Positions 32,520-61,254 of a DNA stretch of 64,000 nt are shown here, one piece after another (within the stretch, counting starts at the first letter, position 1; each line of letters opens with the position of its first letter). The notes under the pieces are model-generated. The model was not told the DNA's origin. It saw nothing but the letters and a program-made list of their open reading frames with translations, and did no database searches. The stretch lies in IMG/VR virus record IMGVR_UViG_3300028045_000001, positions 62,001 to 126,000 of that record; one strand, written 5' to 3'. Both the position numbers and the translations under genes were made by a program.

Positions 32520-33782
32520 ATGCACAATATATTTGTTCAATTTAATGAGTCCAACAAAAAACTTACAGATATGGATATATTGGAATCAACTATGAAGTTC
32601 TTTGAAGAGTTTGAAGAAGTAGATGAGTTATTCCGAGAGCTCGATTCTGAGTTGAACAGGTGCAGTAATGCACAACTTATTTGTGCTACAGTGAGCGAGT
32701 TCGGGCTTACTCCCGCCGTAGCCAAAGTTACAAGTGACCATGACTTAACAATGGCACTTGGTGAGCAAACCGCGTCATTGCAGCAATTTATAGATGGAAC
32801 TTCTGAAAAGGCCATTGAAGTAGAAGTCGTAATGAATGAAATGAAAAAATTCATTCAGGACAGTATGAATACTCTAGTAAAGATAGTGCTCACAGTAGTT
32901 AAAAAACTCATAGAGCTTAGTGGGAAAGTAGTGACCTACATAATCCGTGCGCTTAATCACAATAAAGACGAGGTTCGTGAATTACGGGAAACCATGGATG
33001 AGACCATCAAAGAAGTTACGGAGGTGTCAACCAAAGATATCAGTTCAAGAAACCCAATGTATACAGATGAATATGTCATGAATGTAGAATTATGGCATGC
33101 TGGGAAACATCCAAAGCAAGCGGAAATCGAATTGACTCCTACTACTAACTATGCTGCGTTTGTTAAAATTCGTGAGACACTGGCGAATAAGGCAAGCATG
33201 CTGCAGGATACTGACGCTTTGATCCAAGACTTCGTCGGTAATTTAGATACGGAATACTACAATACGTTCCAAGAAATTTTAAAGGGATTGCATTTCGATT
33301 TCTATTGGGATAAGAAGAACCTAAGTCTAAATAGATTATCATTAGATAAATCTAAAATTGGAAAGAAGGGCGGCGCTAAGGGAATAGACAATAAGACGAA
33401 GAAGCCTCATTTCGAGGCTAAGTTAAATGAGCTGCTAACTGGGCAATTAGATAATCAAATGGCACCAGTACTCGTTATGATTAATGCACAAAATGGATTG
33501 ATCAAAGATACGAAGAAGTATCTTACCGAATTAATTAAATCATTTGATGGAACTAATATACAGCCCAATGATAAACATTATCAAGTGGCCTCACAATTGG
33601 AAGAACGATATGGCTCTACTGGTAGAAGCGATGACGGTAAGGGTGGGATCCATGAGCTGAGTAAGGCGGTTCTCGCATACAGAAGATCTATAATGGAACG
33701 ATGCCTGTATGTAAGTAATACGCATACAAAAATGATTAGCATTATATGCAAAACTATGGCTTCGACCATACCAAAAAAATAA
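32520..33782 (+). CDS. Putative internal head (ejection/inner body) protein, paralog 1
   Basis: Acidic N-terminal propeptide-like region, SLQQFID...EVVMN motif, then amphipathic helix, as in phiKZ internal head paralogs. Confidence 0.6.
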   Translation: MHNIFVQFNESNKKLTDMDILESTMKFFEEFEEVDELFRELDSELNRCSNAQLICATVSEFGLTPAVAKVTSDHDLTMALGEQTASLQQFIDGTSEKAIEVEVVMNEMKKFIQDSMNTLVKIVLTVVKKLIELSGKVVTYIIRALNHNKDEVRELRETMDETIKEVTEVSTKDISSRNPMYTDEYVMNVELWHAGKHPKQAEIELTPTTNYAAFVKIRETLANKASMLQDTDALIQDFVGNLDTEYYNTFQEILKGLHFDFYWDKKNLSLNRLSLDKSKIGKKGGAKGIDNKTKKPHFEAKLNELLTGQLDNQMAPVLVMINAQNGLIKDTKKYLTELIKSFDGTNIQPNDKHYQVASQLEERYGSTGRSDDGKGGIHELSKAVLAYRRSIMERCLYVSNTHTKMISIICKTMASTIPKK

Positions 33783-33791
33783 TGCTTTATG

Positions 33792-33821
33792 ATAGCAGCT
33801 CCAAACATTTGGAGCTGCTAT
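33792..33821. terminator. 14-bp stem inverted repeat with 2-nt centre
   Basis: ATAGCAGCTCCAAA-ca-TTTGGAGCTGCTAT. Confidence 0.7.
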
Positions 33822-33841
33822 AAGTAAGAGGGCGACGATAA

Positions 33842-35962
33842 ATGGATACTGTGTTGTTATATTTCAAAGATTACTTGGCTAAGTGTGCGGTTATTTATGA
33901 TGCAGAGACGCCCAATAAATCCTTTATTAAACTGAGTACCATTTATAAAAAAAAGGGGATAGAGAACAATAAATGGATGTTAGCTCTGTGCCAAAAAGAT
34001 CTAATAGGGGTTGATCCACATAGTAGTGAATTATCGTATGATCAGAAATTAAAAATAGGACTCGAGTGCAAGATAAACCCCATATATTTTTTTAGAGAAG
34101 TTTGTCGTGTGCCAGTGACGGGATCTAACCCAGTTCCTTTTTTGGCGGACCAAGCTAACCTACCTGTACTGTGGCTGTTTCTTAGTAGTATAAACTTGTT
34201 CGAAGTCATAGCAAGACAAATTGGTAAGACTGTATGTATGTTAGCAATATATGAGTATATAACGTATATAGGCTACTACAACTCCTCATCGAGTATGGTA
34301 ACACAGACAGACAAACTCCGCGTTGAAAATATCTCTAGGCTAAAGGTAATGCGCGATGCCCTTCCTAAATGGATGCTGCATAAATCCATAAGGGACAGTG
34401 ATAACAAAGAGGAGCTGTACTACGAAGCGTTGGGCAATAAGCTACTCACCTTTGTTGGGTCGGCGGATCGAAATGCAGCGGATGGTAAGGTACGTGGCCT
34501 TACTGTACCAACTCTAGGCTGGGACGAGTTCCCGTACATCAAAAATAATGAGGTCATGTATAAAGCTGCCACTGCCACCATGTCTACTGCAATTGAACAA
34601 GCGCGGGAAGCTGGAGTGCCCTCAGCCAATATGATATTCACAACGGCAGGGGATCTCACCACAAGGGATGGTAAGTTTGCTTACTCGCTTGTACTTGGCG
34701 CGATGTCATGGCAGGATATACTATTTGATAGCATTGATATGAGTAGCCTAAAGAAAACTGTCAATGCAAACAGCGTTAATGATATGGTTTATATCACCAA
34801 ATCCTATCTGCAATTGGGGAAGACTAAGGAGTGGTTAGAAGAGCGTAGAAGAAAGAACTCGTTGTCTGAAGCAGAGTTAGATAAAGATTTTAGATGCATT
34901 TGGTCAACGGGGAACAGGGAAACTTCAGTGGTTGATCCTACGATACTCAAACTATTAAACGAGTATCAAAGGGATCCCGAGTATATACAACAATATGACA
35001 ATACTCATATATGTTGGTTTAAAAGTAAGGCTGACATTGATAGGATTGCTCCAACAATATCGTGTGTTATGGGGGCTGACGGCAGTGAGGCCATAGGAGC
35101 TGATTTCACGACATTCGTTATAACTGACTCCTCTGATCTTTCTGTGCTCGGCACATGTAAATGCAATATATCCAACTTGTTACAATTATCAGAGATGATA
35201 TTTGAACTGCTGATGAAATTTAAACGCATGATCTTCGTGCCAGAACGCAATAGCACAGGGGCGGCCATAGTAGACAACATATTGATATTCTTTTCACGTG
35301 CGAATGTCAATCCATATAAACGAATATTTAATACATTTGTTGATACAGGGGATAATTTAGCAGTTAGTAAAATAAACCAACTTATAAGTCCACTTGGCTC
35401 AGATAAAAAACGATTTGGATTTAGGACTACGGGAAGATCAAGAGATCTACTATACAATACTGTATTACACGACAGTATATCCGAATGTAAAACCAAACTA
35501 TATGATCAAAGACTTATAGAAGAGATACAAGGGTTGGAGAAAAGGAATGGTAGGATTGATCACTCTGAGGCCGGACACGATGATTTACTTGTGGCTTGGC
35601 TACTGTGTCTGTGGTTCATAAAGTACGCCAGGAATACACATCTTTACGATATAGATAGTTCTAAATTTATGGTCAACCATATAGATCCACACGCCAAGTA
35701 TACCAAGCAAGAAATAGAGCAACAAATGCAGCTTAGAGTACGCCGAGAAGGATTGGTGGAACTTATAAAAATATCATTCTCCAATTCTATGGGCGAGGTA
35801 TATAAACGAGAACTGAGGCTCATTGAATCGGCTATCAATGAAGATATTAAAGTTCCCGTTAAAACCGCCAGTGACGTTGAAGAATCTGTCCGCAAAAAAA
35901 GAGATAATAGAAAGAGGGATTTGCCAGCAACGTTACGACGCTTTTACCCACCGGCAGTATAA
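33842..35962 (+). CDS. terL: Terminase large subunit (phiKZ gp25-like)
   Basis: Walker A ARQIGKT, Walker B LGWDEF, coupling motif TTAG, nuclease MGADGSE and RIDH...GHDDLLVAWL. Confidence 0.92.
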   Translation: MDTVLLYFKDYLAKCAVIYDAETPNKSFIKLSTIYKKKGIENNKWMLALCQKDLIGVDPHSSELSYDQKLKIGLECKINPIYFFREVCRVPVTGSNPVPFLADQANLPVLWLFLSSINLFEVIARQIGKTVCMLAIYEYITYIGYYNSSSSMVTQTDKLRVENISRLKVMRDALPKWMLHKSIRDSDNKEELYYEALGNKLLTFVGSADRNAADGKVRGLTVPTLGWDEFPYIKNNEVMYKAATATMSTAIEQAREAGVPSANMIFTTAGDLTTRDGKFAYSLVLGAMSWQDILFDSIDMSSLKKTVNANSVNDMVYITKSYLQLGKTKEWLEERRRKNSLSEAELDKDFRCIWSTGNRETSVVDPTILKLLNEYQRDPEYIQQYDNTHICWFKSKADIDRIAPTISCVMGADGSEAIGADFTTFVITDSSDLSVLGTCKCNISNLLQLSEMIFELLMKFKRMIFVPERNSTGAAIVDNILIFFSRANVNPYKRIFNTFVDTGDNLAVSKINQLISPLGSDKKRFGFRTTGRSRDLLYNTVLHDSISECKTKLYDQRLIEEIQGLEKRNGRIDHSEAGHDDLLVAWLLCLWFIKYARNTHLYDIDSSKFMVNHIDPHAKYTKQEIEQQMQLRVRREGLVELIKISFSNSMGEVYKRELRLIESAINEDIKVPVKTASDVEESVRKKRDNRKRDLPATLRRFYPPAV

Positions 35963-35995
35963 AATATTAAATTGTTGGGATAAGGATATATTAAA

Positions 35996-37243
35996 ATGTA
36001 TAAGAATCTGAAAGAGGCGTTCAATAAAAACTTTGAAGTTATAATAACCCCAGCCATTATAAATCATATAGAAAATTATTGTATCCAATGGGAGCTACAT
36101 AAGAAACATCCTTTGACATTAAACAGCGTATACATAGGAATCCACAAATTAAGTTTTTTAAACAGTGAGGATGGCCAATACCTACTTGGGTTATTCGATA
36201 CAACCATTAAAGAAGTAGCTGCTGTGTTAAAGAAGACAGAGGGTGTAGAGTTCAAGCACAACGTAGCATCCCACCCTTACAATCTTTTTGCTTTGTGGGT
36301 GTACTACAAAATAGTTCATTCCAATGTATCGGCTAAACAGAAGCATACTGCGTGCTTTTGTTTGTTGAAGATGCTGCAGTATAAATTTTTTTCTGGGAGA
36401 ATACGGATACATTTTAAGCATCCTCCAGATCAAGCAACTATGGATTATACATTAAATGAACTGGATAACAAATTCGATATCGTTAAGTATGGGACATGGA
36501 AGAAGGTAATAGAGGCTGCATCACTCGATATCATGGACAAGAAGTCCATTCACTATAATGCACTACGGACATTTGCAACAGATAAGGACGTAAGAGATGT
36601 GGTGGTCAATACGTTCAATAAAGTCTCAAGTAGGGTTAAGATTATAGCGCAAGCATGGTACCGTAACAAAGCACATGATAGGGTCATCACCTCGTCTGCG
36701 TTGACTACGGAATTTGAAGGGAAAAAGATAATAAAGAATATAAGTGGGATTGAGAACATGCTGTCCTCCATACATTCGCAAATAATATCTGGTCCAGCAT
36801 TTATAGATCATAACGATATGGAGATAGTGGTATCTATAACTAGAAAAATTAGCTCCGAGATGCTGCAGCGAACACTTATGCAACTATCAGATGTAGCATT
36901 GCAACAGGCCCGTATGGATAAGCACGAAGCTATTACAAAAATTAAGGGGTATGAGACAATAGTAAGTATGAGGATGTTAGTTAATGAATTACTACTAGTT
37001 GTTTACAATGCATGCCTTTTAGAAAAAGTTAATACAAAGAACCCACTTAGGATAATAGAGAAGGCATCCAACTTAATGCAGTCGTCACAGATAAAAGACC
37101 TGCGTGTACTAAGAGTTAAACGATCATTGGATCACTTCATAACTGAACTCGGCATTAGTCGACGCCACGCTACGATAGTGTCACTTAGATCGGCAGTTGT
37201 AATATATCTCTTATTGAGGTCATTTAAATACATGGCGAATTAA
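35996..37243 (+). CDS. phiKZ-like conserved virion/head protein (415 aa)
   Basis: HNVASHPYNLF, LQYKFFSG, L.NKFDIVKYGTWKKVI patterns recalled from the phiKZ gp32-like family. Confidence 0.55.
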   Translation: MYKNLKEAFNKNFEVIITPAIINHIENYCIQWELHKKHPLTLNSVYIGIHKLSFLNSEDGQYLLGLFDTTIKEVAAVLKKTEGVEFKHNVASHPYNLFALWVYYKIVHSNVSAKQKHTACFCLLKMLQYKFFSGRIRIHFKHPPDQATMDYTLNELDNKFDIVKYGTWKKVIEAASLDIMDKKSIHYNALRTFATDKDVRDVVVNTFNKVSSRVKIIAQAWYRNKAHDRVITSSALTTEFEGKKIIKNISGIENMLSSIHSQIISGPAFIDHNDMEIVVSITRKISSEMLQRTLMQLSDVALQQARMDKHEAITKIKGYETIVSMRMLVNELLLVVYNACLLEKVNTKNPLRIIEKASNLMQSSQIKDLRVLRVKRSLDHFITELGISRRHATIVSLRSAVVIYLLLRSFKYMAN

Positions 37244-37244
37244 C

Positions 37245-37288
37245 TATGTGACATACGAACGCCTTGCAAGGCGTTCGTATGTCACATA
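37245..37288. terminator. Perfect 44-bp loopless palindrome (centre TTGCAA) between convergent genes
   Basis: TATGTGACATACGAACGCCTTG|CAAGGCGTTCGTATGTCACATA. Confidence 0.88.
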
Positions 37289-37293
37289 TGTAC

Positions 37294-38508
37294 TTACCTT
37301 AAAGAATCTAATTCCTTTTTAACGTATTTTTCTGTAGCTATCGATATAGTGGAAATATCTCCTATAAAGCTATACGCCATCTTAGTTATTTCATGTAATA
37401 ATTTTGACCCACATGTTATGGCGGCGGCAGAGTGTTTCTGAACTTTTCGGTACTCAGTTGGGTCCCCTTTTGTTTCAGTTAGGAGTTTGCTGTATTCGTT
37501 TAGTTCTTTCGTTATTAACTGACCCGCCTTGGTTATAGCAACACCCCCACCCTCGACTGCAGTATCAATAGTAAATAAATAATCTGTGTCTAAGAATAGC
37601 TGGAAAATAAAGTATGCTTTCGTTAAATTATCAACGGTGCCGAATCGAAATTCGCCGGCAGTCATGGTTACCACTTCATATTTCATTTCTGGAGAAATAG
37701 CAACGTTGATGCCAAGCAGTCTAAATGCTTCAAATAGCTCAGTTGAGAGTGCTTCAGAATAATCTGGATCAGAATCATACCCTTTTCTTAAACTTTTTAT
37801 TTTTGTTTCCCAGGGAGTTATTAGTGACCCAAGTTGAGCGTACTTAAGTTTTTTAATTATTTTAATCTTTTCAACTATATCCTGAACTTTAGTTTTTATA
37901 ACAACTCTTTCTTTGAGTAGGTTGTTCTTGCTTTTTTTTGTGAACCACTCATGTGTAGCATCAATGACTTCTTTTTTGTTTGGGACTCTTTCTCCTCCGA
38001 GTGTACGTATAGCCAATTGGCGCAGTAGGTGATCTAATGTTGTCTCTTTCTTTTTTAGATCGGATTTAGATATCTTAGAAAATAGCTTAAATTTTCTAAG
38101 CAGCTTAATAAACATCTGGCGTAGTAGGGCTAAGAGTTTAACGAACTTATCATATCCAGTTTTAATAAGCTTAGTGATGCTATTCATCATGACTTCTTGC
38201 ACGATATCGACATCGTCAATATCATCCATATATCCTTGTAGAGATACATCCGATTCGATGAACAGCTCGTTGTAGTTCCGCTTTATGGCCAACTGAGCCA
38301 TCCCTTTATTTAGCCCATTCTCCGAGATTACTTCTGCAAATTGAGATACAGTCCCTATGTCATTAATGAGGGTGTCCATTTCAAAAACTACAGTATCTAT
38401 CTCATTGAATATCTCATTGATATCAATCCTTGCAGCAATAATATCAGAAGAAGTAGCCTCCTCAGTTCCCATTTCAAATAAAACTTCAATTTTATTTTTA
38501 TTTTTCAT
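37294..38508 (-). CDS. Putative internal head protein, paralog 2
   Basis: SLQGYMDD...QEVMMN motif; N-terminal similarity to 32520..33782 and 38540..39871. Confidence 0.6.
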   Translation of the reverse strand: MKNKNKIEVLFEMGTEEATSSDIIAARIDINEIFNEIDTVVFEMDTLINDIGTVSQFAEVISENGLNKGMAQLAIKRNYNELFIESDVSLQGYMDDIDDVDIVQEVMMNSITKLIKTGYDKFVKLLALLRQMFIKLLRKFKLFSKISKSDLKKKETTLDHLLRQLAIRTLGGERVPNKKEVIDATHEWFTKKSKNNLLKERVVIKTKVQDIVEKIKIIKKLKYAQLGSLITPWETKIKSLRKGYDSDPDYSEALSTELFEAFRLLGINVAISPEMKYEVVTMTAGEFRFGTVDNLTKAYFIFQLFLDTDYLFTIDTAVEGGGVAITKAGQLITKELNEYSKLLTETKGDPTEYRKVQKHSAAAITCGSKLLHEITKMAYSFIGDISTISIATEKYVKKELDSLR

Positions 38509-38539
38509 AGTTTTAATTTACATCTCCTCTTTTTATGCA

Positions 38540-39871
38540 TTACTCATGTTCTTTTTTAAGTTGCGTTAATAGTAATCCCAATTGATAGTTTACAGCGTTC
38601 CCGATTTTAATGAGTTCGGTCGTGTGTGCTGCCGTTGTTTTTAAAAGCTCCATGAGTATTTTGGAAGCTACCCCAACATTGATGCGTGACCTTTTTACCA
38701 CATAAGGAGTAGCAGTGCCGTTCTGCATATCCTCGGATTTAAACCTTTCGGCTTTCAATCTCAGAACCGTTTGATCCCACCAACGTAAAAAGAATTTATC
38801 TATAGATCTCAGTTCATCAGTGGATAATTTCTTCCAACTAAGGTATGCCTTTTTTGCCAACTCATCTGCAGTAGCTAACATCCGAGCTGGAGTGTGGCGG
38901 TAAATTTTACCATCGTTCATATATGCTATCGGCATATGATATTGTCTATATATGGTCAATAATTCATACAGGTCAGTAACTTTGTGTTTTACGCTGACGG
39001 GTTTTTTAGAAACTTTAAGTCCGTTGGAATTTAGTGGCCCTACTGCCACACCAAGTTTACTCAGATCCTCTATGACATCACTGGAGGATAGAAGTGTTGT
39101 ATAAAATGGAGTTGGAATAGGGATGGTGTTCTTTTTAAATGCATCCATCTCTTGTACAGATGCATCATGAAAGCTATTGATGGCATTGTAATCTATTGTA
39201 TTGAGTATCTCAATTGATTTAAACAACGAGGTAGGGGAATCACTAAGGTGTATGTTGGGCATTGTAACATTATGATCGCTGATTACTTCGAACACCCGAG
39301 AGTCGTCCACCCATTCGACTGTGCCGTCGCGCTTGAGCCTATCGGGTCCCTCATACATATCTATTATACCCCGAATGCGTTCAATAACGTCTTCGATCGA
39401 AATGTTATTTTTTTTTACTTTCACATCGGACTTAAACAAGAATGAAAAAACTTTTTTAGCTATCTTAATAAATAAGTCCCTAATATGATGCATGGCTTTG
39501 ACAATATTATCGTACCCCTTTTTAATGGTATCCGCAAGCCCATTCATCATAACTTCTTGAACAATAACTGAATCACACTGGTCGTCTATATATCCTTGAA
39601 GCGATGTATGCGAGTGCTTAAAAAAAGTATCGAGGTTATATTTAATTCCAAGGGTAGCCATCCCCTTGTCCAGTCCAGTTTCTTCAAGTGTAGTTTTAAA
39701 AATATCCATAGATTCTAACCTTCTATTATCGGAATCCATTTCATCTATGCTAACTGCAATTGTATCAAATAAATTATTTAGTTCGATCACGTCGTCAAGA
39801 TAATCTATCTCATTGTGGATAGGGATATTGCGTGATGGGTCAACATCCATATTTGCAAATAGGTCCTTCAT
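38540..39871 (-). CDS. Putative internal head protein, paralog 3
   Basis: SLQGYIDD...QEVMMN motif; AAGGAGAG RBS before ATG 39871 (ORF track 39937). Confidence 0.6.
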   Translation of the reverse strand: MKDLFANMDVDPSRNIPIHNEIDYLDDVIELNNLFDTIAVSIDEMDSDNRRLESMDIFKTTLEETGLDKGMATLGIKYNLDTFFKHSHTSLQGYIDDQCDSVIVQEVMMNGLADTIKKGYDNIVKAMHHIRDLFIKIAKKVFSFLFKSDVKVKKNNISIEDVIERIRGIIDMYEGPDRLKRDGTVEWVDDSRVFEVISDHNVTMPNIHLSDSPTSLFKSIEILNTIDYNAINSFHDASVQEMDAFKKNTIPIPTPFYTTLLSSSDVIEDLSKLGVAVGPLNSNGLKVSKKPVSVKHKVTDLYELLTIYRQYHMPIAYMNDGKIYRHTPARMLATADELAKKAYLSWKKLSTDELRSIDKFFLRWWDQTVLRLKAERFKSEDMQNGTATPYVVKRSRINVGVASKILMELLKTTAAHTTELIKIGNAVNYQLGLLLTQLKKEHE

Positions 39872-39890
39872 GTTGCTCTCCTTTGTATGA

Positions 39891-40730
39891 CTACACGATG
39901 TAATAAAGTAATCTGTTGAACTCCCTTTTATCGGCAATGATACTGGACCTTGAGAATTTTCTTAATTTTTCATTATATTCTGCTTCTTGATTTTCCCAGC
40001 TCCTGACTTTTTCAGCAAATGCCCCTATCTCAAATCCTCCTTCAATTCTTCCTTTATCCAATGACAATATTAGCTTATTATAAATATGCGCCTTTACTGC
40101 ACATACAGCTAAATCAACAAAAGATTGATACGCTGCCTCGCCAAGATTGTTTAAGTCCTTGTCATAATTAATCTTGAACGTTAGTACATAATTTAAGTGA
40201 GACTGAGTGGCTGGTATCAATTGGATTATGTTGGTACCAACTACTTCGGCTATTTGTGAGACACTTTCAGTTGCACCGGAGATCATTTCTATAACTCTTC
40301 CTCCAGCACCTGCCATTGTGTTAGTACCTCCAAGTCTAGAAAGCGAAAGGATTCCCGTCGCGTCACCAGTGGCGTTATCGAACACGGATGGGTAATTAAT
40401 AGATGTGACCGATGTTATATCGCCACCCTCTAATAGTTCTTTCGGTATTCTATAGATAGAGTATCGTCCTGAGGACCTTCGTTTATCGTTGTCATTTAAC
40501 TCTGGCATCACCGCCATTTCTTCCCTTAACATTATATCCTTGGTTCGAGCGCCCCTTAGATTTATATCTGGTAGTACCCAGGTGCCAAGGACTTGTTCCC
40601 TTATTACATTGTCTACATTGATCCTATTATCTCTCTTAGGATTAAATACCACATCAAGTATCTCTTTTGGCACAGTATTTGATAATCTCACAAAAAAAGT
40701 CTCTATTGGGTTGAATGAGCCACCAGGCAT
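39891..40730 (-). CDS. phiKZ-like conserved virion protein (~279 aa)
   Basis: NPI......VPKEIL..VF.....VDNVIREQVL..WVLPDINL.G pattern; GGAGG RBS before ATG 40730 (ORF track 40922). Confidence 0.6.
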   Translation of the reverse strand: MPGGSFNPIETFFVRLSNTVPKEILDVVFNPKRDNRINVDNVIREQVLGTWVLPDINLRGARTKDIMLREEMAVMPELNDNDKRRSSGRYSIYRIPKELLEGGDITSVTSINYPSVFDNATGDATGILSLSRLGGTNTMAGAGGRVIEMISGATESVSQIAEVVGTNIIQLIPATQSHLNYVLTFKINYDKDLNNLGEAAYQSFVDLAVCAVKAHIYNKLILSLDKGRIEGGFEIGAFAEKVRSWENQEAEYNEKLRKFSRSSIIADKREFNRLLYYIV

Positions 40731-40842
40731 AATTTGACCTCCTAAACTAGCCGTTAAAAGTGTACTGTAAGCAGTTATATAATAATCTAAAATTGATAAA
40801 TATTTTATACCCAATACAAGAATATTTATTAGGAGAACAGTT

Positions 40843-41076
40843 ATGGACAAAACAAAGCAGCCTCTTTCAAAGGTATTGTCAATGAAGCCAACAGAAGCTG
40901 ATCTTGGCTCCAGTGAGTTCAAAGAATTATGGAACTACATTAAGTCTTGGGAGATAAAAGTTCCCGGAGATACTGTCCACGATAGGGGGAGACCAGCAGG
41001 TCAGCATGTAATGGATATTCTGGTAGCAGTCGGCCTAAGGAACTCAGCCGATTATTTTAAATCAGATACAGAGTAA
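40843..41076 (+). CDS. Small hypothetical protein (77 aa)
   Basis: AGGAGA RBS; divergent from 40730. Confidence 0.65.
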   Translation: MDKTKQPLSKVLSMKPTEADLGSSEFKELWNYIKSWEIKVPGDTVHDRGRPAGQHVMDILVAVGLRNSADYFKSDTE

Positions 41077-41198
41077 TTCAGTCTAATATAAAAAAAGGGG
41101 GGGAGTCCCAATGTTTTATTTACTGACCGATCTTCAAAGTCTAAGAGTATAATAGACGTACTTTAAATGACTTTATTAAAATTATAAGATAGATAATC

Positions 41199-41232
41199 CA
41201 CAGGGCTGTGAGCATATGCTCACAGCCCTGTG
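41199..41232. terminator. Perfect 34-bp loopless palindrome (centre CATATG)
   Basis: CACAGGGCTGTGAGCAT|ATGCTCACAGCCCTGTG. Confidence 0.85.
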
Positions 41233-41263
41233 AGTAAATTGAATGTCTTTTAATTTTTTTCAT

Positions 41264-41274
41264 TTATATATTAC
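41264..41274 (+). promoter_or_regulatory. Putative early promoter TTATATATTAC with no downstream CDS
   Basis: Exact motif copy followed by ~600 nt without an ORF of 60 aa or more. Confidence 0.65.
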
Positions 41275-41900: not shown

Positions 41901-41941
41901 TACCTTGATGATCTCAATTAGTTACCGTGTTTCTTTTTTAT

Positions 41942-51345: not shown

Positions 51346-51422
51346 TTTTAGTATCTCCTTTTTTATAATGAATCTCTGCCATTGTATAAAATAACCAGTA
51401 CGATAAAAGCGAGGGTAAATTT

Positions 51423-54289: not shown

Positions 54290-54308
54290 ACAAATCAATA
54301 GTCCTACG

Positions 54309-54338
54309 GTTCACTATGCCTGCGAGGGCATAGTGAAC
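54309..54338. terminator. 12-bp stem hairpin with possible GCGA tetraloop
   Basis: GTTCACTATGCC-tgcgag-GGCATAGTGAAC. Confidence 0.7.
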
Positions 54339-54391
54339 GTACATTTTATAAAGGGGTAACTTTATAATTTAAATAGAGGGGGAACATTAAC

Positions 54392-54475
54392 ATGGCAAAT
54401 ATTGTCTATACTTCGAAGGCCACGCAACAAAGACATGTGTTGGATGGCTTGGTGATTAAAAAAGACGTTCGTTGA
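54392..54475 (+). CDS. Candidate 27-aa small ORF (MANIVYTSKATQQRHVLDGLVIKKDVR)
   Basis: GAGGGGGAA RBS-like element upstream of ATG; below ORF-track cutoff. Confidence 0.3.
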   Translation: MANIVYTSKATQQRHVLDGLVIKKDVR

Positions 54476-54544
54476 TTTGGCAGCAGCCCTATGAAAATTA
54501 AAAAGAATAATTAAAGATCGGCGGACAATGAATAGGAGTCAGTA

Positions 54545-55444
54545 ATGATTGATTTGATGGAATATAAACATTTGTTATCGAATAAAGAAACTCATGATAT
54601 AGGGCAATCTATACGGGAGCTGGATGCGTTAATAATCATGTTGGATGATCAAGTTAGCCTGCAAGCTTTTTCTGCAATTGGACTTATCAAAGTAGTCTTT
54701 GATAAGTTCTCCGCATTGCTGCGTAACATGGCGTACACTATCACTAGGGCAACAAAGGACTTAACACAAAGTGAATTTATGTTGTTCTTTAATGGTAATA
54801 ATAGTAAAGTAAAAAGAGTCTTGGCATTGCCTTATGAGGTCGTTAAAGGTGTAACTATTGATACGCCAGCAGGACTAACTACGACATACGAAAAAGTAAC
54901 CAGTGATGTTGTCGTGACGTATAACGTGCTATCTATGTTGGAAACATCTACCAACGCACTTAGACTTTTTAATGCTGTGTTAACAGATACAACAGATAGT
55001 GCAGTGGAACGTAATTTGACGCAGGTAGTAAAAAAATCAATCAGCAACAGAATAAAGAATTCCGCCAAGCTCGTAAAAACAAACTTCGCCAAAGGAACTA
55101 CTGTACGAGCACCCTTCAATAGAGTTTTCGAATACGAAGATTCCCTTGGTAACACTGTCACTAATTTACGTTCGTTGGAAAACAGGCTACTGAACGTATC
55201 ATCTATACATAAAAACATGAAGGAGAGTGAAAGTATATGTGATACTCTAATCTCAAATCTGACTAGCGGCGACGGCGACGTGGTTGAATTATCGAACGGT
55301 TCATTGAAGACACTCAGTGAGTACGTTCGCAATATCGCAGGTATCTTTGAAAACTATGCTCTGACGCTCACGGTACACCAAGTGATAGAGCACAATATGC
55401 AATATGTTATCAAAGAGCTTGGGGCTAGTCACAAGATTTTTTAA
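54545..55444 (+). CDS. Putative internal head protein (299 aa)
   Basis: AGGAG RBS; short acidic N-terminus ending in VSLQAF; V..P.GL...Y pattern as in phiKZ-like head proteins. Confidence 0.5.
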   Translation: MIDLMEYKHLLSNKETHDIGQSIRELDALIIMLDDQVSLQAFSAIGLIKVVFDKFSALLRNMAYTITRATKDLTQSEFMLFFNGNNSKVKRVLALPYEVVKGVTIDTPAGLTTTYEKVTSDVVVTYNVLSMLETSTNALRLFNAVLTDTTDSAVERNLTQVVKKSISNRIKNSAKLVKTNFAKGTTVRAPFNRVFEYEDSLGNTVTNLRSLENRLLNVSSIHKNMKESESICDTLISNLTSGDGDVVELSNGSLKTLSEYVRNIAGIFENYALTLTVHQVIEHNMQYVIKELGASHKIF

Positions 55445-55457
55445 TGAGGTCCAAATT

Positions 55458-55991
55458 ATGACCGGAGAAGCGATTGAATCGGCTATAACAAAAGAGCAAT
55501 TGCAAGTAGCATTACAAAACAAAGATATCGAATACATTAAACACGAAATAACAGTTATCTCTGACAGCGTTAAAGAAGTGGCCTCCAATACCGTCGAAGC
55601 CATCAAAACCTATTCCATAGAGCTCACGGAAATAAGTAATAACATAGCCTCAATGTATGAAATAATGGTTTCTCTGAAAGAAGCGGATGTAAAGATAAAT
55701 AGTCGTATAGATAAGTCCGATGCCGTCCTTGATGACACAGCGGTAGAGATTAAAAATCTAATGATAGGGGCAAATATATACAAAGAAAAGATTTCAGAGT
55801 TAACCAAGCAACTATCAGATGTTAAAAAAGAAATCGACGACATTCGAAAAGATATAAAAGCGGTCAGTGCTTCGACCAATACGTTTTTCGGAAAATTGGT
55901 TGTAACAAAGAGTATCCTTACAACAATAGTGGCAGTGGCGTTGTTATTTGCTAAAGATATTTTTAAATGGCTACGCACCTTCTTTATTTAG
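55458..55991 (+). CDS. Coiled-coil protein with single C-terminal TM helix (holin-like candidate)
   Basis: Heptad-rich; ILTTIVAVALLFA then KDIFKWLRTFFI; GAGG RBS before ATG 55458 (ORF track 55404). Confidence 0.55.
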   Translation: MTGEAIESAITKEQLQVALQNKDIEYIKHEITVISDSVKEVASNTVEAIKTYSIELTEISNNIASMYEIMVSLKEADVKINSRIDKSDAVLDDTAVEIKNLMIGANIYKEKISELTKQLSDVKKEIDDIRKDIKAVSASTNTFFGKLVVTKSILTTIVAVALLFAKDIFKWLRTFFI

Positions 55992-56010
55992 TTGGAGTAG
56001 TTCTATTTTG

Positions 56011-56044
56011 ACATATAGGGGTCTCCATGGAGACCCCTATATGT
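56011..56044. terminator. Perfect 34-bp loopless palindrome (centre CCATGG) between convergent genes
   Basis: ACATATAGGGGTCTCCA|TGGAGACCCCTATATGT. Confidence 0.88.
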
Positions 56045-57550
56045 TTAAAACAAATCAGTTGTTGTCGAGTTATCTTTTTCGTCGTCCGCATACTCTGCGT
56101 ATATATCTTTTACTGCCTTAGACTCCGAAGCATAATCATCCATTATGCCGTTACTGTTAAATTTATATGCAAAAGATTTATCTTTAGCTGGTGTGTTATC
56201 TACGTATCTATGCTTACCTCTTAGGGCCGTAAGATATGGGTTGCCTAAATGATTTTCTTCTATGTGTGTGTACATTGTCAGGTCAAACTCATGTTCGAGT
56301 CCTTTACATACGGCTATACAACTAGGACTAAAGCGTTTAACAATATTGGCGGAGTCCGATGATATTGTTAGGGCTGTATGGTTTAGTTGGTTGGCTGTGA
56401 TATAGGCATAGCCGTGGTATCGTGCATGGTTGACAACATCCGTGGCCAACTTACTTAGTCCTCTTTCTGAATTTTCATTATTAAGTTGCATCTTTGCAAG
56501 GTAATCTTTTATGACAGCAAAGATCTCGTACCCTTCTTGTTTATATTGTTCAAATAAATCTAGATATGATTGGTAATCGAATGTGTCTCCAAGTCTTCTT
56601 ACAATTTTAAAATGCCATCCGTTCTTAGCGAACTCTTTATGTACAAAAGCCACTATATCCCTATCTGTGAAATCTTCTGGTGGGGCAGTATTGAATAGAT
56701 TGAGGTACAACTCTATAAACCATTTCCTGGTATTTTTCATTGCCTCGTTTTCAAGTGATATGAATAGGGCCAATGGCTTTAAATCAGTTTTAGGTGGCTT
56801 ATTTAGTGTCGTTATCCACCTTCCGATTTTTAGTAACCACCCAGACTTAAAGTGATGGGATAGTCCATATATCATCATGGTTTCGCCATAGCAAATACCT
56901 GCGTTTTCCCCCATCATTGCGTTCAGTCCCTGAAGGCCCATCTTGAGGACATTGGTCGATGCGGTTCTTTTTGAATCAGCAGCGAATGCACGCTCCATAG
57001 AATCAGTATCATTGAAATCTATCTCATCTACCCTATCAGTTGTTTGGATGGCCAACTTAGGTGGACTAAATGATCGGGCTGTCTGCAGTACACTATCCAG
57101 TAGTTCATCTTGTTTTGCTGGATTGGACGTGTACTTACATTTCCTTACCCTACTTATCATGGCACATACATGAGCATCGTACGAGTACCAAGTTATGCTC
57201 TTGTATAATTTAGATCGTATGCGCCTACACTTTTCAGGATTGATTGTATTGTCGATTATACACTTTATTGACTCTAATATTTCTGGATCGCCATCTATCT
57301 GCTTAGAATGCTGTAACTTGAGCAGTACATCATGAGCCCTCCCATCAGTTATATTCCCTGACTCATGCAGCATGGAATTTATTATTCCAACCAACAATAC
57401 GTTTATGTCAGAGTTTAGTTCATCGTCACGGTCAACCTCTTTTTCGAATACCTCCAGCACAGATCTAACTAATTCTTTGTCATCCGCCTCATCGCTATGG
57501 GTAATTAAGTAAACAATATCAATTAATAATTCATGATCGATGGTAATCAT
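56045..57550 (-). CDS. dnaB: DnaB-like replicative helicase (phiKZ gp118-like)
   Basis: GLQGLNAMMG..GICYGE, degenerate Walker A GLSHHFKSG, FISLENE, DYL, TANQL, RGKHR. Confidence 0.8.
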   Translation of the reverse strand: MITIDHELLIDIVYLITHSDEADDKELVRSVLEVFEKEVDRDDELNSDINVLLVGIINSMLHESGNITDGRAHDVLLKLQHSKQIDGDPEILESIKCIIDNTINPEKCRRIRSKLYKSITWYSYDAHVCAMISRVRKCKYTSNPAKQDELLDSVLQTARSFSPPKLAIQTTDRVDEIDFNDTDSMERAFAADSKRTASTNVLKMGLQGLNAMMGENAGICYGETMMIYGLSHHFKSGWLLKIGRWITTLNKPPKTDLKPLALFISLENEAMKNTRKWFIELYLNLFNTAPPEDFTDRDIVAFVHKEFAKNGWHFKIVRRLGDTFDYQSYLDLFEQYKQEGYEIFAVIKDYLAKMQLNNENSERGLSKLATDVVNHARYHGYAYITANQLNHTALTISSDSANIVKRFSPSCIAVCKGLEHEFDLTMYTHIEENHLGNPYLTALRGKHRYVDNTPAKDKSFAYKFNSNGIMDDYASESKAVKDIYAEYADDEKDNSTTTDLF

Positions 57551-57610
57551 TATTTATATTCCTAATTATTTTATATAAGTATGGAAATTCTCATAGGAGG
57601 TCTTTAAAAC

Positions 57611-59161
57611 ATGTCACATCTCTTTCACACATACATGGCACGTAGAACTAAAACTGAGTCTACGAAAGATATGCCATTTAGTGAACAAGTCTGGATAAAC
57701 AATGCAACCTCAGCTTACGATGCCTTATCATTGCGACACAAAATTATACATTGTGTCAGGCAACGTTTTATACATTCATATTTTAAGCATGTTTGTGATA
57801 TATATCATGTCGATGGCCCATCTATTTTTACGGACATGGAAGCCGAATTTAATCGAAGGGAGAAGCGGATTGATGACGAGATCAATTATGCTAACGTAGG
57901 AGACTATGACGATGCTTGGTCCATAGCTAAGTCATTCATCACCCGTTGCAGATACATTAAGGGATACATGCCACCGAACGAAGCTCGTGAATTGGTCAGG
58001 CCAGATATTAATGATATCATGGGATTTTTTATAGATCAGAATACAGAAGAAAATTTTGTACCGAGTGTAGGTGGGCTTGATGCAATTAAAGGGATAGTTG
58101 CCTTCATTTTATATGCGGTAAAGCAACATGTTCCGATAACTGAAATGGATACCTTTATTCCGGATCCTTGTGTCCTATATCCAATGTATTCTGGGAATGG
58201 AGTTGTCTGGGTGAATAAAGTCCAAGTAGCCGAGCCGGGCTACTTACCCGAACGCAAGCTTCGGGAAGACTATAAATTTCATGATCATATATTAAGCTAT
58301 TTGAACATGCTGAACTTATCCGGCCAAGATTTTAACGCCATCATGCTATCCCTTTCATGCTTAGCGGTTGTAAATGACTCCCGCTCTGCGACAGGCTTTC
58401 AAAGATTATGTAATGTTGTAAACAATTATTATCTTAGCGGACAAAGACTCTCCAATAAATGGGAGGCTAAACTACCAGCACCTATATTCTTAGCAACAAT
58501 GAGATTTATGAGTGCACTGGTGACCGAGAATAATGTAAAAGTAGACAATCTTCACCTGTTGCATTTCATCTATGATCATGCACCTCCAATATATGCAAAT
58601 CTTGGCGATGTTGTCAAAAAGGCAATTGGAGGCCGGTATGTAAACCAGCATGAGGTGGCTATGCTAAAGAAATATGGCATTTCTAAAATAGTGCCAATGA
58701 AACGTAGCTATGATCTTTATAATCATATAAGGATGAATGCGGCTGACGATGATTTAGGTGAAGATGAATCAGTTACTGAAAATGATACAGGTGAGGGCGA
58801 CGGAGAAGAGGTTACTGGCGATAAGAACGTTGATGCCGGTGACGCGGATTCTGATACTAACATTTCAGATCCAGATGCAGACGGATCTGCCGAAGGGGAG
58901 GAGGAACCTGAAGAAACCCATATCGTAAAGATTGATGACGCTGGTATAGAATTTGAATTAAGTAGCGGTAATCTCTCATTTGCTGAATATATTTTGAGAG
59001 AAAGAATTATAAAACGATTGAATACAATATTGGCCAACCCAGGTAATCTTTCGGCAGAGAAAGTTGAATACTTAAAGTATTTCAGAAATCACTGGATTTA
59101 CTTGGTCAGTATAAACACTCTGTTGGCAATAACAAAAAATCTCAATATTGAAGGAGTTTGA
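57611..59161 (+). CDS. Conserved protein between helicase and capsid gene (phiKZ gp119 position), acidic C-terminal linker
   Basis: AGGAGG RBS; D/E-rich low-complexity stretch then YILRERI...LKYFRNHWIYLVS; ATGA-type overlap with capsid gene. Confidence 0.65.
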   Translation: MSHLFHTYMARRTKTESTKDMPFSEQVWINNATSAYDALSLRHKIIHCVRQRFIHSYFKHVCDIYHVDGPSIFTDMEAEFNRREKRIDDEINYANVGDYDDAWSIAKSFITRCRYIKGYMPPNEARELVRPDINDIMGFFIDQNTEENFVPSVGGLDAIKGIVAFILYAVKQHVPITEMDTFIPDPCVLYPMYSGNGVVWVNKVQVAEPGYLPERKLREDYKFHDHILSYLNMLNLSGQDFNAIMLSLSCLAVVNDSRSATGFQRLCNVVNNYYLSGQRLSNKWEAKLPAPIFLATMRFMSALVTENNVKVDNLHLLHFIYDHAPPIYANLGDVVKKAIGGRYVNQHEVAMLKKYGISKIVPMKRSYDLYNHIRMNAADDDLGEDESVTENDTGEGDGEEVTGDKNVDAGDADSDTNISDPDADGSAEGEEEPEETHIVKIDDAGIEFELSSGNLSFAEYILRERIIKRLNTILANPGNLSAEKVEYLKYFRNHWIYLVSINTLLAITKNLNIEGV

Positions 59162-61254
59162 ACATGTTTCTAAATGAAATACTTTCTAGTATCGATGACA
59201 ACCATGATAATAAGGGCGATCTTGCTGCTGCCGGTGCGACAGCTATTGGGCGCAAGATCACAAAAACGGTAAATCAATGGACTGCCCACAACAACCTTGA
59301 CGGGACAGTAGGGACGTATCAAGTACCAGCTGTAAACTCTGCACTTGATGAGCACACACTCGAATCAATAGGGGTCGAAGCCATAGATGCGCTTGTAAAA
59401 TCCTGTGATATCACATCTGGTTCCCTCCAGGCAAAGAAACTTGTTGCTATCGATATTGCAAAGAATGCTGTCTGTTCTGGACCGGACATCATGTCTCTCC
59501 AAAATATGATGGACCCTATGAACTCGGAAGTTCAGTTTACTGATCCTGGGACACTATCATTCTTCCCAAGCTCTGTCCCCGATGCACATGCATTTGGTTC
59601 GGATATCGATAAGGTATCATCCGATTTACGTCTCACACTTTCAGTGGACATTATGTCATTTCATAATCGAATTGCCCACAGGTTGATGCACGTTAAACCA
59701 ACTCCAGATGCAATCATTCGCTATCGAAAAGTGAAAGCAGTGGTCTTCAACAACCAGGATATGGATGCTGCCACGATGGAGCTTGTGGATCTGTATGAAG
59801 ATGCATCGATCGTTAGTCCTACGCTTCCCAAAGTTATTCCACGGACAGCGAATGGTGCTCCAGAAGAGGGATACATAGAGCCAGGTTCAGATGATCTGTT
59901 TAAACTATCGATTGATGCTTCCAAGCCAGGGTACTCCTCTTACAATCGACAGGACACTATTGCTGATGGTGCCTTCATTGATAAGGTCAAGTGGGAAATT
60001 GGCCCAGATGCCGCTGGTCGATCTGATATGATCTATACCGTGGGTAAAGCGCGGGGCAAGCTTGGATTTACCACAAACTCCGAAGCATCTATGCGTACGC
60101 TATTCTTTGAGACCGACATCATTGTCGACAAAACAACAGAAGATGCCAGTGGTACTGCTGCTGCAGCTTTTGCTGGCATCCATGCGGATGACCAACTGGT
60201 AATTAAGTTGACACTCACTGTGAGACTTCACCTTCGCACCGGCGACATAAATACTACCGGAAGCGTTGCTGCAGTTAAAGTGGAAAAGAAGGGTGGGGGC
60301 ATAGCACAGCCGAGTTCTACTACCGCTCTAGAGGCTATCCAAACAGGCGTGGCGTTTACGAAAATATCTTCATATGCGATTGATGCAAGATTCTCAGAAG
60401 AAAATCTTCGAAAATCTTCTATTGAGATTGAAGCGATCCATTCCGAACTTGCTTACAACCTTCCAACTGGAGTTAACTACTTTTACAGCGAACCACTCAT
60501 GGGGAAAAAGAAAGATGACCGAGCGGTTGAGCTGCTGACTTCAATCATTGGGATCGGCCAGGATAAGAAAGTTGCAGGCGAGATCGAGCAGGTACTTAAT
60601 GATATCACGTCCGCTATTACTGTTACAGACGATAGTTACTCACACAATGGTGCTGGTACAAGCTATGCAGCCGGATCACTGGTACGGCCATTTGTATATA
60701 CTGGAAATATTGACTGTAACGATTTCAAAACACATGAAATCTCAAATCTGCCATATGATGTTAAACAATTTGTTATGACAACAATTGGAAATGTTCTGGA
60801 CAGAATTCATGCGACCAGTTTCTTTCCGCAACAGCTGGCAGGAAGAGCTCCCACATATAAGGTGCTAACTTCCGGGGACATCATCTCCAAGCTTTTCTCT
60901 CAGCCACGGATGGCAATTGCAGGACAACCGGACAAGTCCACCACTCTTGAGGGTGGATCTTCGTACAGACTGGAACTTCCAAATGGAGCCATCATTGAAC
61001 TTCATGCATCTACCCAGGCAGAGCATGCAGATAAAATTATCGGTATCCCATATGTGAGCGATCCAAATTCTGAACTTAACTTCGGAGCAAATTGGACATT
61101 CGGCATTGCAGTGGCCCATTATGTAAAGACTGGCGCGGCTGTTGCAAAACGCATTGTTGCTAACTCAAGGGAGGCATTCATTCCTACGAACCCACTTGGA
61201 TTCCTATTGAGTGTACGTAACCTTGATGATATTCTAAGTAACTACAAGGACTAG
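59158..61254 (+). CDS. Major capsid protein (phiKZ gp120/EL-type)
   Basis: 698 aa; position after helicase + gp119-like gene; AFG..DK...DLRLTL.V.IM.FH, DARFSEENLRK, C-terminal ELNFG...F...VAHY......RIVAN.RE..IPTNPLG..L.V patterns. Confidence 0.78.
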   Translation: MNMFLNEILSSIDDNHDNKGDLAAAGATAIGRKITKTVNQWTAHNNLDGTVGTYQVPAVNSALDEHTLESIGVEAIDALVKSCDITSGSLQAKKLVAIDIAKNAVCSGPDIMSLQNMMDPMNSEVQFTDPGTLSFFPSSVPDAHAFGSDIDKVSSDLRLTLSVDIMSFHNRIAHRLMHVKPTPDAIIRYRKVKAVVFNNQDMDAATMELVDLYEDASIVSPTLPKVIPRTANGAPEEGYIEPGSDDLFKLSIDASKPGYSSYNRQDTIADGAFIDKVKWEIGPDAAGRSDMIYTVGKARGKLGFTTNSEASMRTLFFETDIIVDKTTEDASGTAAAAFAGIHADDQLVIKLTLTVRLHLRTGDINTTGSVAAVKVEKKGGGIAQPSSTTALEAIQTGVAFTKISSYAIDARFSEENLRKSSIEIEAIHSELAYNLPTGVNYFYSEPLMGKKKDDRAVELLTSIIGIGQDKKVAGEIEQVLNDITSAITVTDDSYSHNGAGTSYAAGSLVRPFVYTGNIDCNDFKTHEISNLPYDVKQFVMTTIGNVLDRIHATSFFPQQLAGRAPTYKVLTSGDIISKLFSQPRMAIAGQPDKSTTLEGGSSYRLELPNGAIIELHASTQAEHADKIIGIPYVSDPNSELNFGANWTFGIAVAHYVKTGAAVAKRIVANSREAFIPTNPLGFLLSVRNLDDILSNYKD

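Follow-up and report, generated by a model that had tools for sequence, protein, structure and literature searches.

Glutamine or histidine in place of glutamate at predicted head maturation sites of an uncultured phiKZ-like jumbo phage and its few relatives

In an uncultured giant phage and its few relatives, the positions at which phiKZ-type phages are cut after glutamate during head maturation were found to carry glutamine or histidine instead, which suggests that the head protease and its targets changed cutting rule together. The analysis concerned a window of 64,000 nucleotides (positions 62,001 to 126,000 of IMG/VR record IMGVR_UViG_3300028045_000001), to which the coordinates below refer unless marked as genome coordinates. 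The window belongs to a complete 239,960-bp genome of a very divergent phiKZ-like jumbo phage, from source sample JGI Ga0233414. Relatives lie in JGI Ga0310149_000083, in NCBI JAAEOX010000219.1 and in runs SRR28147566 and SRR11567031. Searches of GenBank phages by tblastn with the capsid protein, by megablast with 24 kb of sequence and by tblastn with a distant family member (P0018) returned nothing, and a search for related loci with the capsid protein alone found no relatives. A move of the P1 residue away from Glu is well supported by sequence comparison, but the new P1 looks like Gln or His and not Gln alone.

SLQ tripeptides in putative head proteins

An earlier note, made from the sequence alone, had reported that S-L-Q replaces the canonical S/A/G-x-E motif at the end of acidic N-terminal segments in four putative head proteins and twice in the capsid N-terminus. 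This observation was confirmed, as all six tripeptides are present, at 32775-32783 (+), 38236-38244 (-), 39596-39604 (-), 54656-54664 (+), 59422-59430 (+) and 59494-59502 (+). The two further motifs of the note are also present, with PDAHAFG forming residues 141-147 of the capsid ORF (59578-59598) and the portal SLRSF lying within PSLRSFG at residues 239-245. The segments upstream of each SLQ are acidic, with a net charge of -4 to -16, like known propeptides, while the rest of each protein is neutral to basic.

Genome-wide, SLQ occurs 25 times against 12.9 expected from composition, whereas SLE occurs 18 times against 27.9 expected. However, eight of the 25 lie in one nine-member paralog family at a single alignment column and are not independent. 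The 17 SLQ outside the family are at about the background level, although twelve of them lie in the first 150 residues (binomial P = 0.025). The presence of two SLQ in the first 145 residues of the capsid protein has a P of about 3e-4 to 6e-4. SLH is not enriched (14 against about 10 expected). The SLQ in the gp128 homolog (14918-17134) and in the tail sheath (20697-22985) were judged to be due to chance, as there is no canonical site in phiKZ gp128 at that place and the sheath is not a head protein. The protein upstream of the capsid gene (57611-59161) shows no informative site. An alternative genetic code was rejected, as Gln codons align with invariant Gln in capsid relatives.

The prohead protease and neighboring genes

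The ORF at 30113-30979 (+) encodes a 288-aa protein of the Peptidase S80 (phiKZ gp175-like) family of prohead proteases, as indicated by matches to Pfam PF20034 (69.8 bits against a cut-off of 23.4) and to the PHROG head maturation protease phrog_3014 (E 4.5e-19). Its predicted catalytic residues His86 (30368-30370), Ser156 (30578-30580) and Asp180 (30650-30652) are invariant in alignments of 60 and 109 family members. An AlphaFold2 model (pLDDT 76, pTM 0.74) has residues 186-203 disordered, and the top three Foldseek hits of the model are T4 gp21 (5JBL, E 1.3e-4, probability 1.00), consistent with a predicted herpesvirus/T4 gp21-type protease fold. The S80 profile found no solved structure by sequence, and the Pfam S77 (T4 gp21) model had no match in the genome. 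A complex prediction with protease residues 1-200 and capsid residues 100-165 gave a score of 0.00, which counts neither for nor against binding.

In 106 other S80 enzymes, the self-cleavage motifs S-P-[ASG]-L-E (phiKZ ALE-210) and G-x-E↓[SC] (the arrow marks a known, inferred or candidate cut) have Glu in 104 of 106 at both columns. At the sequence level these [SAG]-x-Glu motifs are absent here, the inferred self-cleavage motifs being QPHIH199↓RV (30695-30715) and VRLH235↓SD (30806-30823). In this phage and in the relatives at 76% and 60% identity they read H-I/L-H and R/H-L-H, while the 41% relative has R-M-H at the second motif. HIH199 lies in the only long disordered stretch of the model. 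Many basic residues conserved in Glu-type enzymes are lost in this clade, namely K30, K80, R110, R116, H120 and K182 in phiKZ numbering. K88, next to the catalytic His, is lost in three of the four members, the 41% relative keeping Arg there. From these changed columns, K88, R110, R116, H120 and K182 are candidates for S1 residues.

Immediately upstream, as in phiKZ, lies a homolog of the virion structural protein gp176 (29425-30108, +; phmmer E 7e-27; phrog_2926). Downstream, the ORF at 30966-31766 (+) encodes a 266-aa ClpP-like protein (PF00574, 55.9 bits against a cut-off of 20.2) in which the Ser (GSMGS) and His (MYHMS) motifs are present on alignment to solved ClpP structures, and whose N-terminal extension of about 100 aa holds VSLK25↓A and GSLH103↓L. 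It is followed by a second, very divergent ClpP-like protein of 237 aa (31732-32445, +; phrog_1827, E 3.4e-8), which had no match to solved structures and by eye lacks the catalytic Ser and His. The same pair follows the S80 gene in a relative (L018).

Substitutions in the predicted substrates

The phiKZ-type major capsid protein is encoded at 59158-61254 (+) (PF25620, E 3.7e-14, 52.2 bits against a cut-off of 27) and aligns over its full length with 25 relatives. All 25, including phiKZ and SPN3US with experimentally mapped sites, have [SAG]-x-E↓[AS]FG (or GLE↓N, ATE↓Y) at the maturation column. Phage phiKZ is cut at Glu163↓Asn164 (PMC11297242) and SPN3US after residue 130 (PMC5694885; checked against the sequence). 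The known sites were taken from later papers that cite the primary phiKZ and 201phi2-1 work (PMC3323674, PMC3719823, PMC2871425). The present phage instead reads PDAH144↓AFG (59578-59598), with the following AFG kept, and its closest relative (35% identity) has NNQ↓SFG. The SLQ of the capsid protein lie upstream at residues 89-91 (59422-59430) and 113-115 (59494-59502).

Three of the SLQ-bearing proteins in the earlier note belong to a putative gp86/gp47-like inner-head family. These are encoded at 32520-33782 (+), with site 1 TASLQ88↓QFIDG (32775-32783) and site 2 EVE↓VVMN (32817-32837), at 37294-38508 (-), with site 1 DVSLQ91↓GYMDD (38236-38244) and site 2 IVQE↓VMMN (38182-38202), and at 38540-39937 (-), with site 1 HTSLQ114↓GYIDD (39596-39604) and site 2 IVQE↓VMMN (39542-39562). 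The likely true start of the last is the ATG at 39871 (the database version has 443 aa). Six further paralogs lie outside the window, at genome positions 2336-3355, 3378-4550, 35714-36727, 38822-39868, 234874-235863 and 238702-239814, of which that at 3378-4550 has SLK instead of SLQ. A profile-profile alignment (hhalign) of the Gln clade against the Glu clade (probability 99.1%, E 6.6e-19) puts V-S-L-Q↓G over p-a-x-E↓S, so that SLQ aligns column for column with the [SAG]-x-E of the distant homologs. Glu is present (x-x-E) in 16 of 16 distant homologs, while Gln is present in 8 of 9 paralogs and in three homologs from two related phages. The paralog profile matched phiKZ gp86 with an E of 1.2e-5 in an hmmsearch against phiKZ ORFs only, over about 55 residues, and had no significant hit to SPN3US gp47.

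The gp89/gp50 homolog, at genome positions 33539-34597, reads V-S-L-Q122↓A, where two relatives have V-D-L-H↓A and V-S-F-Q↓G. This motif sits in an otherwise unconserved linker, five alignment columns from the proven SPN3US gp50 site VATE↓S. The support is weaker for the 299-aa protein of unknown family at 54545-55444 (+), with DDQVSLQ40↓AFS (54656-54664), as it rests on a single homolog, from a relative with canonical Glu sites (locus L014, 5538-6503), which reads DVSEE↓SLA at the aligned place.

The portal protein (17098-19704, +; phmmer E 1.2e-37 to phiKZ gp129) contains PSLR243↓SFG (17812-17832), GASLH57↓T and TPVE↓Y (17728-17742). In the alignment phiKZ ISME↓G and SPN3US GVE↓S lie over SLR, and SPN3US VATE161↓S lies over PVE, although the assignment of these sites is uncertain. 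By comparison of sequences, 7 of 9 homologous positions have lost Glu.

A change of P1 specificity and alternative explanations

The earlier note had inferred that the maturation protease (gp175-like or ClpP) switched its P1 specificity to Gln, and this interpretation is partly supported. A gp175-like protease exists and the canonical Glu is missing at positions homologous to known or near-universal cleavage sites, but the replacement residue is Gln or His. The main capsid cut is therefore more likely at His144↓Ala145 than at either SLQ, and the two SLQ would then be extra cuts inside the propeptide. The explanation considered more likely than not is that the S80 protease of this lineage no longer uses Glu at P1 and cuts after Gln or His, usually with Leu, Ile or Ala at P2, often Ser at P3 and Val at P4, and a small residue at P1', and that its substrates changed with it. 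In this view, the protease would be built into the prohead, free itself at HIH199↓R and RLH235↓S, remove the acidic capsid propeptide at DAH144↓AFG and chop it further at SLQ91↓A and SLQ115↓N. It would also remove the acidic N-terminal targeting segments (about 40-120 aa) of the nine inner-head paralogs at V-S-L-Q↓G-(F/Y)-I-D, and cut the gp89/gp50 homolog (SLQ122↓A) and the 299-aa protein (SLQ40↓A). While the sequences, the homologies and the column-for-column replacement of Glu are established by the analysis, that these positions are cut, and that it is the S80 enzyme which cuts them, is inferred from sequence alone. Val at P4 and a small P1' match the extended preference reported for SPN3US gp245 (PMC10052503). 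Canonical enzymes do not accept Gln, as T4 gp21 fails on a target whose Glu residues were changed to Gln (PMC12991175), and SLQ therefore cannot be a site for an unchanged enzyme. However, one paralog and one relative have SLK, and the portal has SLR where canonical phages have S-M-E or G-V-E, so that either P1 is broader than Gln/His or those sites are dead. The eight SLQ of the paralogs can also descend from one ancestral change.

It remains possible, although less likely, that the protease still cuts after Glu with a relaxed P3 requirement, as in the alternative of the earlier note, which placed cleavage at a downstream (Q/V)E-V(M/V)MN site in three paralogs. This alternative is not excluded. 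The cuts would be at x-x-E↓V/I in the nine paralogs, NSE124↓V in the capsid protein and EYE↓V just before SLQ in the gp89 homolog, SLQ would be a conserved structural or capsid-targeting element inherited from the ancestor of the family, and the old canonical sites would simply be lost. Site 2, 14-20 residues downstream of site 1, keeps Glu in 9 of 9 paralogs (allowing a two-residue shift in two of them) and aligns residue for residue with phiKZ gp86 ISQE122↓AVMATI, a maturation site shown by mass spectrometry, and E↓V recurs near three candidate sites. Some Glu-type homologs have AAQ at site 2, which shows that Gln can mark a disused site and that exchange of Glu and Gln at such positions also happens without a change of enzyme. 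However, this explanation requires the simultaneous loss of the most conserved Glu sites known for this phage group, in the capsid and in both protease motifs, with His or Gln as the replacement in every case rather than a random residue (His makes up 2.2% and Gln 2.8% of the proteome). P3 at site 2 is T, V, T, S, A, T, E, V and V, mostly not the small residue the family needs, and P1' is a bulky Val or Ile. In addition, the close ortholog of the gp89 homolog has no Glu near the site (VTSVRVDLH↓ASHQGGGG) and NSE is not conserved in capsid relatives.

It is doubtful that the ClpP-like protein, perhaps working with its inactive-looking partner, has taken over part or all of head maturation and recognizes the SL(Q/H/K) sites, with the S80 enzyme reduced to another role. 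Two ClpP-like genes follow the S80 gene here and in the 41%-identity relative, while no ClpP is annotated in the roughly 200 kb of phiKZ examined. ClpP-type head maturation proteases exist in other phages (PHROG hits), and the N-terminal extension with VSLK↓A and GSLH↓L appears as if the protein were itself loaded into proheads and processed. However, the S80 triad is fully conserved, and the changed residues sit exactly in the self-cleavage motifs of the S80 enzyme, which points to that enzyme itself. Sequence-specific cleavage by ClpP is not known. It is very unlikely that the motif is coincidental and that the lineage has given up proteolytic head maturation at these sites. The background frequency of SLQ outside the paralog family and the lack of SLH enrichment would fit this, but an intact protease gene is kept in four clade members, the acidic N-terminal segments are retained, V-[SD]-[LF]-[QH]↓[AG] is conserved at one position inside a variable linker across three phages, and two SLQ in the capsid propeptide are improbable by chance (P of about 5e-4).

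Cutting after Glu has been treated as a fixed trait of the T4 and phiKZ head proteases, and the S/A/G-x-E rule is used to predict mature virion proteins in new jumbo phages. If this lineage cuts after Gln or His, motif-based annotation fails for it, and it offers a natural pair of related enzymes for finding what determines P1 choice in this fold as well as a clear case of a protease and at least five or six substrates changing together. A broader and unlikely scenario is that a whole lineage of uncultured jumbo phages has re-coded its head maturation system, with every core substrate following the S80 protease from Glu to Gln/His, and that at about the same time it gained a ClpP-like pair that is itself loaded and processed through SL(K/H) sites. 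It is speculative that such a change was driven by escape from host sensors tripped by Glu-directed prohead proteases, such as the CBASS activation loops described in PMC12991175.

Comparison with known systems

The protease shares its Pfam family, catalytic His, Ser and Asp, and gene neighborhood (a gp176 homolog upstream) with the prohead proteases of phiKZ (gp175), SPN3US (gp245) and 201phi2-1. The same set of predicted core substrates is present, namely the capsid protein, the portal, the protease itself, and gp86/gp47-like and gp89/gp50-like inner-head proteins with long acidic N-terminal propeptides. The known enzymes cut after Glu in S/A/G-x-E (A-x-E in SPN3US), whereas here the homologous positions carry Gln or His, P3 is not always small (Ser, but also Asp, His and Arg), and sequence identity to gp175 is about 18%. 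T4 gp21 (Peptidase S77) has the same predicted fold and the same role, including self-inactivation by autoproteolysis, but cuts after Glu in L/I-x-E. The picornavirus 3C and coronavirus 3CL (Mpro) proteases offer only a working resemblance, with Gln at P1, occasional acceptance of His and a small residue after the cut. They have an unrelated chymotrypsin-like fold, a cysteine nucleophile and a role in polyprotein processing, and this is not a family relationship. With respect to the phiKZ gp86 and SPN3US gp47 inner-head (ejection or vertex-complex) proteins, IVQE↓VMMNSI of the paralogs aligns with ISQE122↓AVMATI of gp86, which also has VASLE↓QYAS where this phage has VSLQ↓GYMD, and SPN3US gp47 likewise has two proven sites, AVE-75 (given as AVE-79 in the earlier paper) and ALE-111. 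The present phage differs from these in having nine paralogs instead of one, a first site that reads SLQ, and C-terminal parts that are unrelated between paralogs.

Genome Context and Divergence

The window (bases 62001-126000) was found to derive from a 239,960-bp virus record with direct terminal repeats and a G+C content of 39.1%, corresponding to JGI contig Ga0233414_10000002. The ORF at 59158-61254 matches the phiKZ major capsid protein family (PF25620, E 3.7e-14), and other phiKZ core genes are also present, namely those for terminase, a DnaB-like helicase, homologs of gp176, gp87-89, gp128 and the portal gp129, and virion RNA polymerase subunits. As listed, the capsid ORF starts at a TTG which overlaps the upstream gene, whereas the database version starts two codons later (696 aa), suggesting a probable correction of the start codon (59158-59166). 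However, the phage is very divergent. No capsid hit was obtained among GenBank phages by tblastn, and among 5.8 billion proteins only two capsid relatives were identified, both at 29% identity.

Occurrence of the SLQ Motif

An earlier note had reported six SLQ tripeptides within this region, as well as PDAHAFG in the capsid protein and SLRSF in the portal, and this observation was confirmed, with each of these motifs being present where it had been placed. The segments preceding each SLQ are acidic (net charge of -4 to -16), while the remainder of each protein is neutral or basic. Genome-wide, SLQ is twice as common as predicted from composition, with 25 copies compared with 12.9 expected, while SLE has 18 copies compared with 27.9 expected. 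This excess comes from one family of nine gp86-like paralogs, three within the window (32520-33782, 37294-38508, and 38540-39937) and six elsewhere in the genome (2336-3355, 3378-4550, 35714-36727, 38822-39868, 234874-235863, and 238702-239814). The ORF at 38540-39937 probably starts at the ATG at 39871 (443 aa in the database), which would exclude 39872-39937. The paralogs share only an N-terminal domain of about 150 residues with the motif F-x-x-x-(V/I/T)-S-L-Q-G-(F/Y)-(I/L/M)-D, and their C-terminal parts are unrelated. Eight have SLQ and one has SLK. The gp86-like protein is single-copy in phiKZ, and its expansion here to nine paralogs with only the N-terminal domain in common suggests a common capsid-targeting module fused to diverse cargo. 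The SLQ copies of the paralogs are not independent, and the chance-corrected signals are therefore the two SLQ within the first 145 residues of the capsid protein (P about 3e-4 to 6e-4) and the bias of the other SLQ copies toward N-termini (12 of 17, P = 0.025).

The S80 Protease and Adjacent ClpP-Like Genes

The ORF at 30113-30979 was identified as a Peptidase S80 (gp175-like) enzyme (PF20034, 69.8 bits) and lies next to a gp176 homolog, as in phiKZ. Residues His86, Ser156, and Asp180 are invariant across the family, and its AlphaFold2 model (pLDDT 76) is most similar to T4 gp21 (5JBL). It is directly followed by two ClpP-like genes (30966-31766 and 31732-32445), with the same pair being present at 10881-12274 of L018, the relative whose protease is 41% identical. 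The first has the catalytic Ser and His motifs and an N-terminal extension of about 100 aa with VSLK25↓A, and with GSLH103↓L exactly where the ClpP core begins (arrows here and below follow the residue at P1 or its equivalent position). The second is very divergent and seems to lack both catalytic residues, which recalls ClpP/ClpR pairs.

Comparison with Canonical Maturation Sites

The core of the argument rests on the comparison of homologous sites. For the capsid protein, 21 additional relatives were collected from IMG/VR, JGI metagenomes, and one metagenome-assembled genome, and were aligned with P0007, P0008 (two further relatives), phiKZ, and SPN3US. All 25 have [SAG]-x-E immediately before (A/S)-F-G, with phiKZ having GLE↓N and SPN3US ATE↓Y. 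These are mapped sites, as phiKZ is cut at Glu163↓Asn164 (PMC11297242) and SPN3US loses 130 residues (PMC5694885), the latter being checked in the sequence. This phage alone reads P-D-A-H↓A-F-G. By walking along the contig of the closest relative, whose protease is 41% identical, a capsid protein was found which is 35% identical and the nearest known, and which reads K-P-N-N-Q↓S-F-G at that column. So inside this clade the invariant Glu has become His in one member and Gln in another. Capsid relatives with canonical Glu sites also occur on a contig binned with a Clostridia genome from sheep colon (L026, JAFVPU010000041.1) and in human-gut assemblies (L032, a human gut metagenome contig), and the wider group may therefore infect gut anaerobes.

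A similar replacement was observed in the protease itself. In 106 other S80 enzymes the C-terminal motifs S-P-[ASG]-L-E (phiKZ ALE-210, seen in the sequence) and G-x-E↓[SC] have Glu in 104 of 106. This phage and its relatives at 76% and 60% identity read Q-P-H-I/L-H↓R-V and (R/H)-L-H↓S, while the 41% relative reads Q-M-I-E↓N at the first motif and R-M-H↓S at the second. HIH199 lies in the only long low-confidence stretch of the model (residues 186-203). All four members of the clade also have Gln four residues before the canonical self-cleavage Glu column (R-Y/F-Q; 30695-30706 in this phage), where 97 of 106 other enzymes have Ser, and in the 41% relative this gives RFQ↓M as an alternative self-cleavage candidate.

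For the gp86/gp47-like family, a profile of the paralog N-domain was searched against 1.8 billion representative proteins, and four non-self proteins from two related phages were found to share the motif, of which three (P0016, P0017, P0019) keep SLQ and one (P0021) has SLK. The same search found 16 distant homologs. A profile-profile alignment of the two groups (probability 99.1%, E 6.6e-19) places V-S-L-Q↓G-y-I-D over p-a-x-E↓S-(gap)-l-d, with all 16 distant homologs having Glu there and 14 of 16 having S, A, or G at P3. At the corresponding place phiKZ gp86 reads VASLE↓QYAS.

In the homolog of gp89/SPN3US gp50 (genome 33539-34597) this phage has EVSLQ↓AD, a close ortholog has RVDLH↓AS, and the 221-kb relative has DVSFQ↓GN, which represents a conserved V-[SD]-[LF]-[QH]↓[AG] inside an otherwise variable linker, five alignment columns from the proven SPN3US site VATE↓SS (listed as ATE-127 in PMC10052503). 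In the 299-aa protein at 54545, QVSLQ↓AFS aligns with DVSEE↓SLA in a Glu-type relative, although this rests on a single homolog. The portal (17098-19704) is ambiguous. PSLR↓SFG lies over phiKZ ISME↓G and SPN3US GVE↓S, while TPVE↓Y lies over the known SPN3US site VATE-161↓S, and GASLH57↓T is also present. A basic residue at the P1-equivalent position, as in the S-L-R of the portal and the S-L-K of one paralog and one relative, is not explained by a Gln/His rule. In total, seven of nine homologous positions have lost Glu, of which six carry Gln or His and the seventh, the portal position, carries Arg. As His makes up 2.2% and Gln 2.8% of the proteome, this pattern is not what random loss of sites would give.

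Evidence for Retained Glutamate Sites

However, other observations argue in the opposite direction. The paralog profile also hits phiKZ gp86 (E 1.2e-5 against phiKZ ORFs only, over about 55 residues), aligning gp86 T-I-S-Q-E↓A-V-M-A-T-I with a second motif, I-V-Q-E↓V-M-M-N-S-I. Processing of gp86 occurs at SQE-122 and that of its 201phi2-1 homolog at SQE-113 (PMC5694885), and the N-terminus of the gp86 cryo-EM model lies near that cut (PMC11297242). In this phage the second site keeps Glu in all nine paralogs, if a two-residue shift is allowed in two of them, although its P3 is mostly Thr or Val and its P1' is Val or Ile. E↓V also occurs at NSE124↓V in the capsid protein and at EYE↓V before the SLQ of the gp89 homolog. 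Furthermore, in several Glu-type distant homologs (P0018, P0020, P0024-P0026, P0028, P0034) the second site reads A-A-Q↓V instead of x-x-E, the mirror image of the situation in this phage, so a Gln can mark a disused site. The alternative put forward in the earlier note, of cleavage at the downstream Glu site, therefore remains a live rival, and a protease that accepts Glu as well as Gln and His is also possible.

Proposed Mechanism and Relationship to Known Proteases

The earlier note had interpreted the motif as a switch of the maturation protease to Gln at P1, a reading which is partly supported, as the comparison points to Gln or His. It is proposed that the S80 enzyme of this clade recognizes Gln or His at P1, with P2 usually being Leu, Ile, or Ala, P3 often Ser, P4 often Val, and P1' small. 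This extended pattern matches the Val at P4 and Ser at P1' reported for SPN3US gp245 (PMC10052503). In this view, the enzyme would self-process at HIH199 and RLH235, would mature the capsid protein at His144↓Ala145 with further cuts at the two SLQ, and would strip the acidic targeting segments from the inner-head proteins. While the sequences and their alignments were observed directly, everything said here of function, including cleavage itself and the enzyme responsible, is inferred from sequence comparison. The enzymes of the clade have lost many basic residues that are conserved in Glu-type enzymes, namely (in phiKZ numbering) K30, K80, R110, R116, H120, and K182, while K88, the residue next to the catalytic His, is lost in three of the four members, with the 41% relative keeping Arg there. 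On sequence alone, this fits the loss of an acid-binding pocket.

A canonical enzyme does not tolerate Gln, as T4 gp21 no longer responds to a target loop whose Glu residues were changed to Gln (PMC12991175). In the literature searched, no report was found of an S80 or S77 prohead protease with a P1 other than Glu. By profile, catalytic residues, fold (as modeled), and synteny the enzyme is a member of the known family Peptidase S80, but it differs from that family in failing its sequence-level hallmark of [SAG]-x-Glu self-cleavage and capsid sites.
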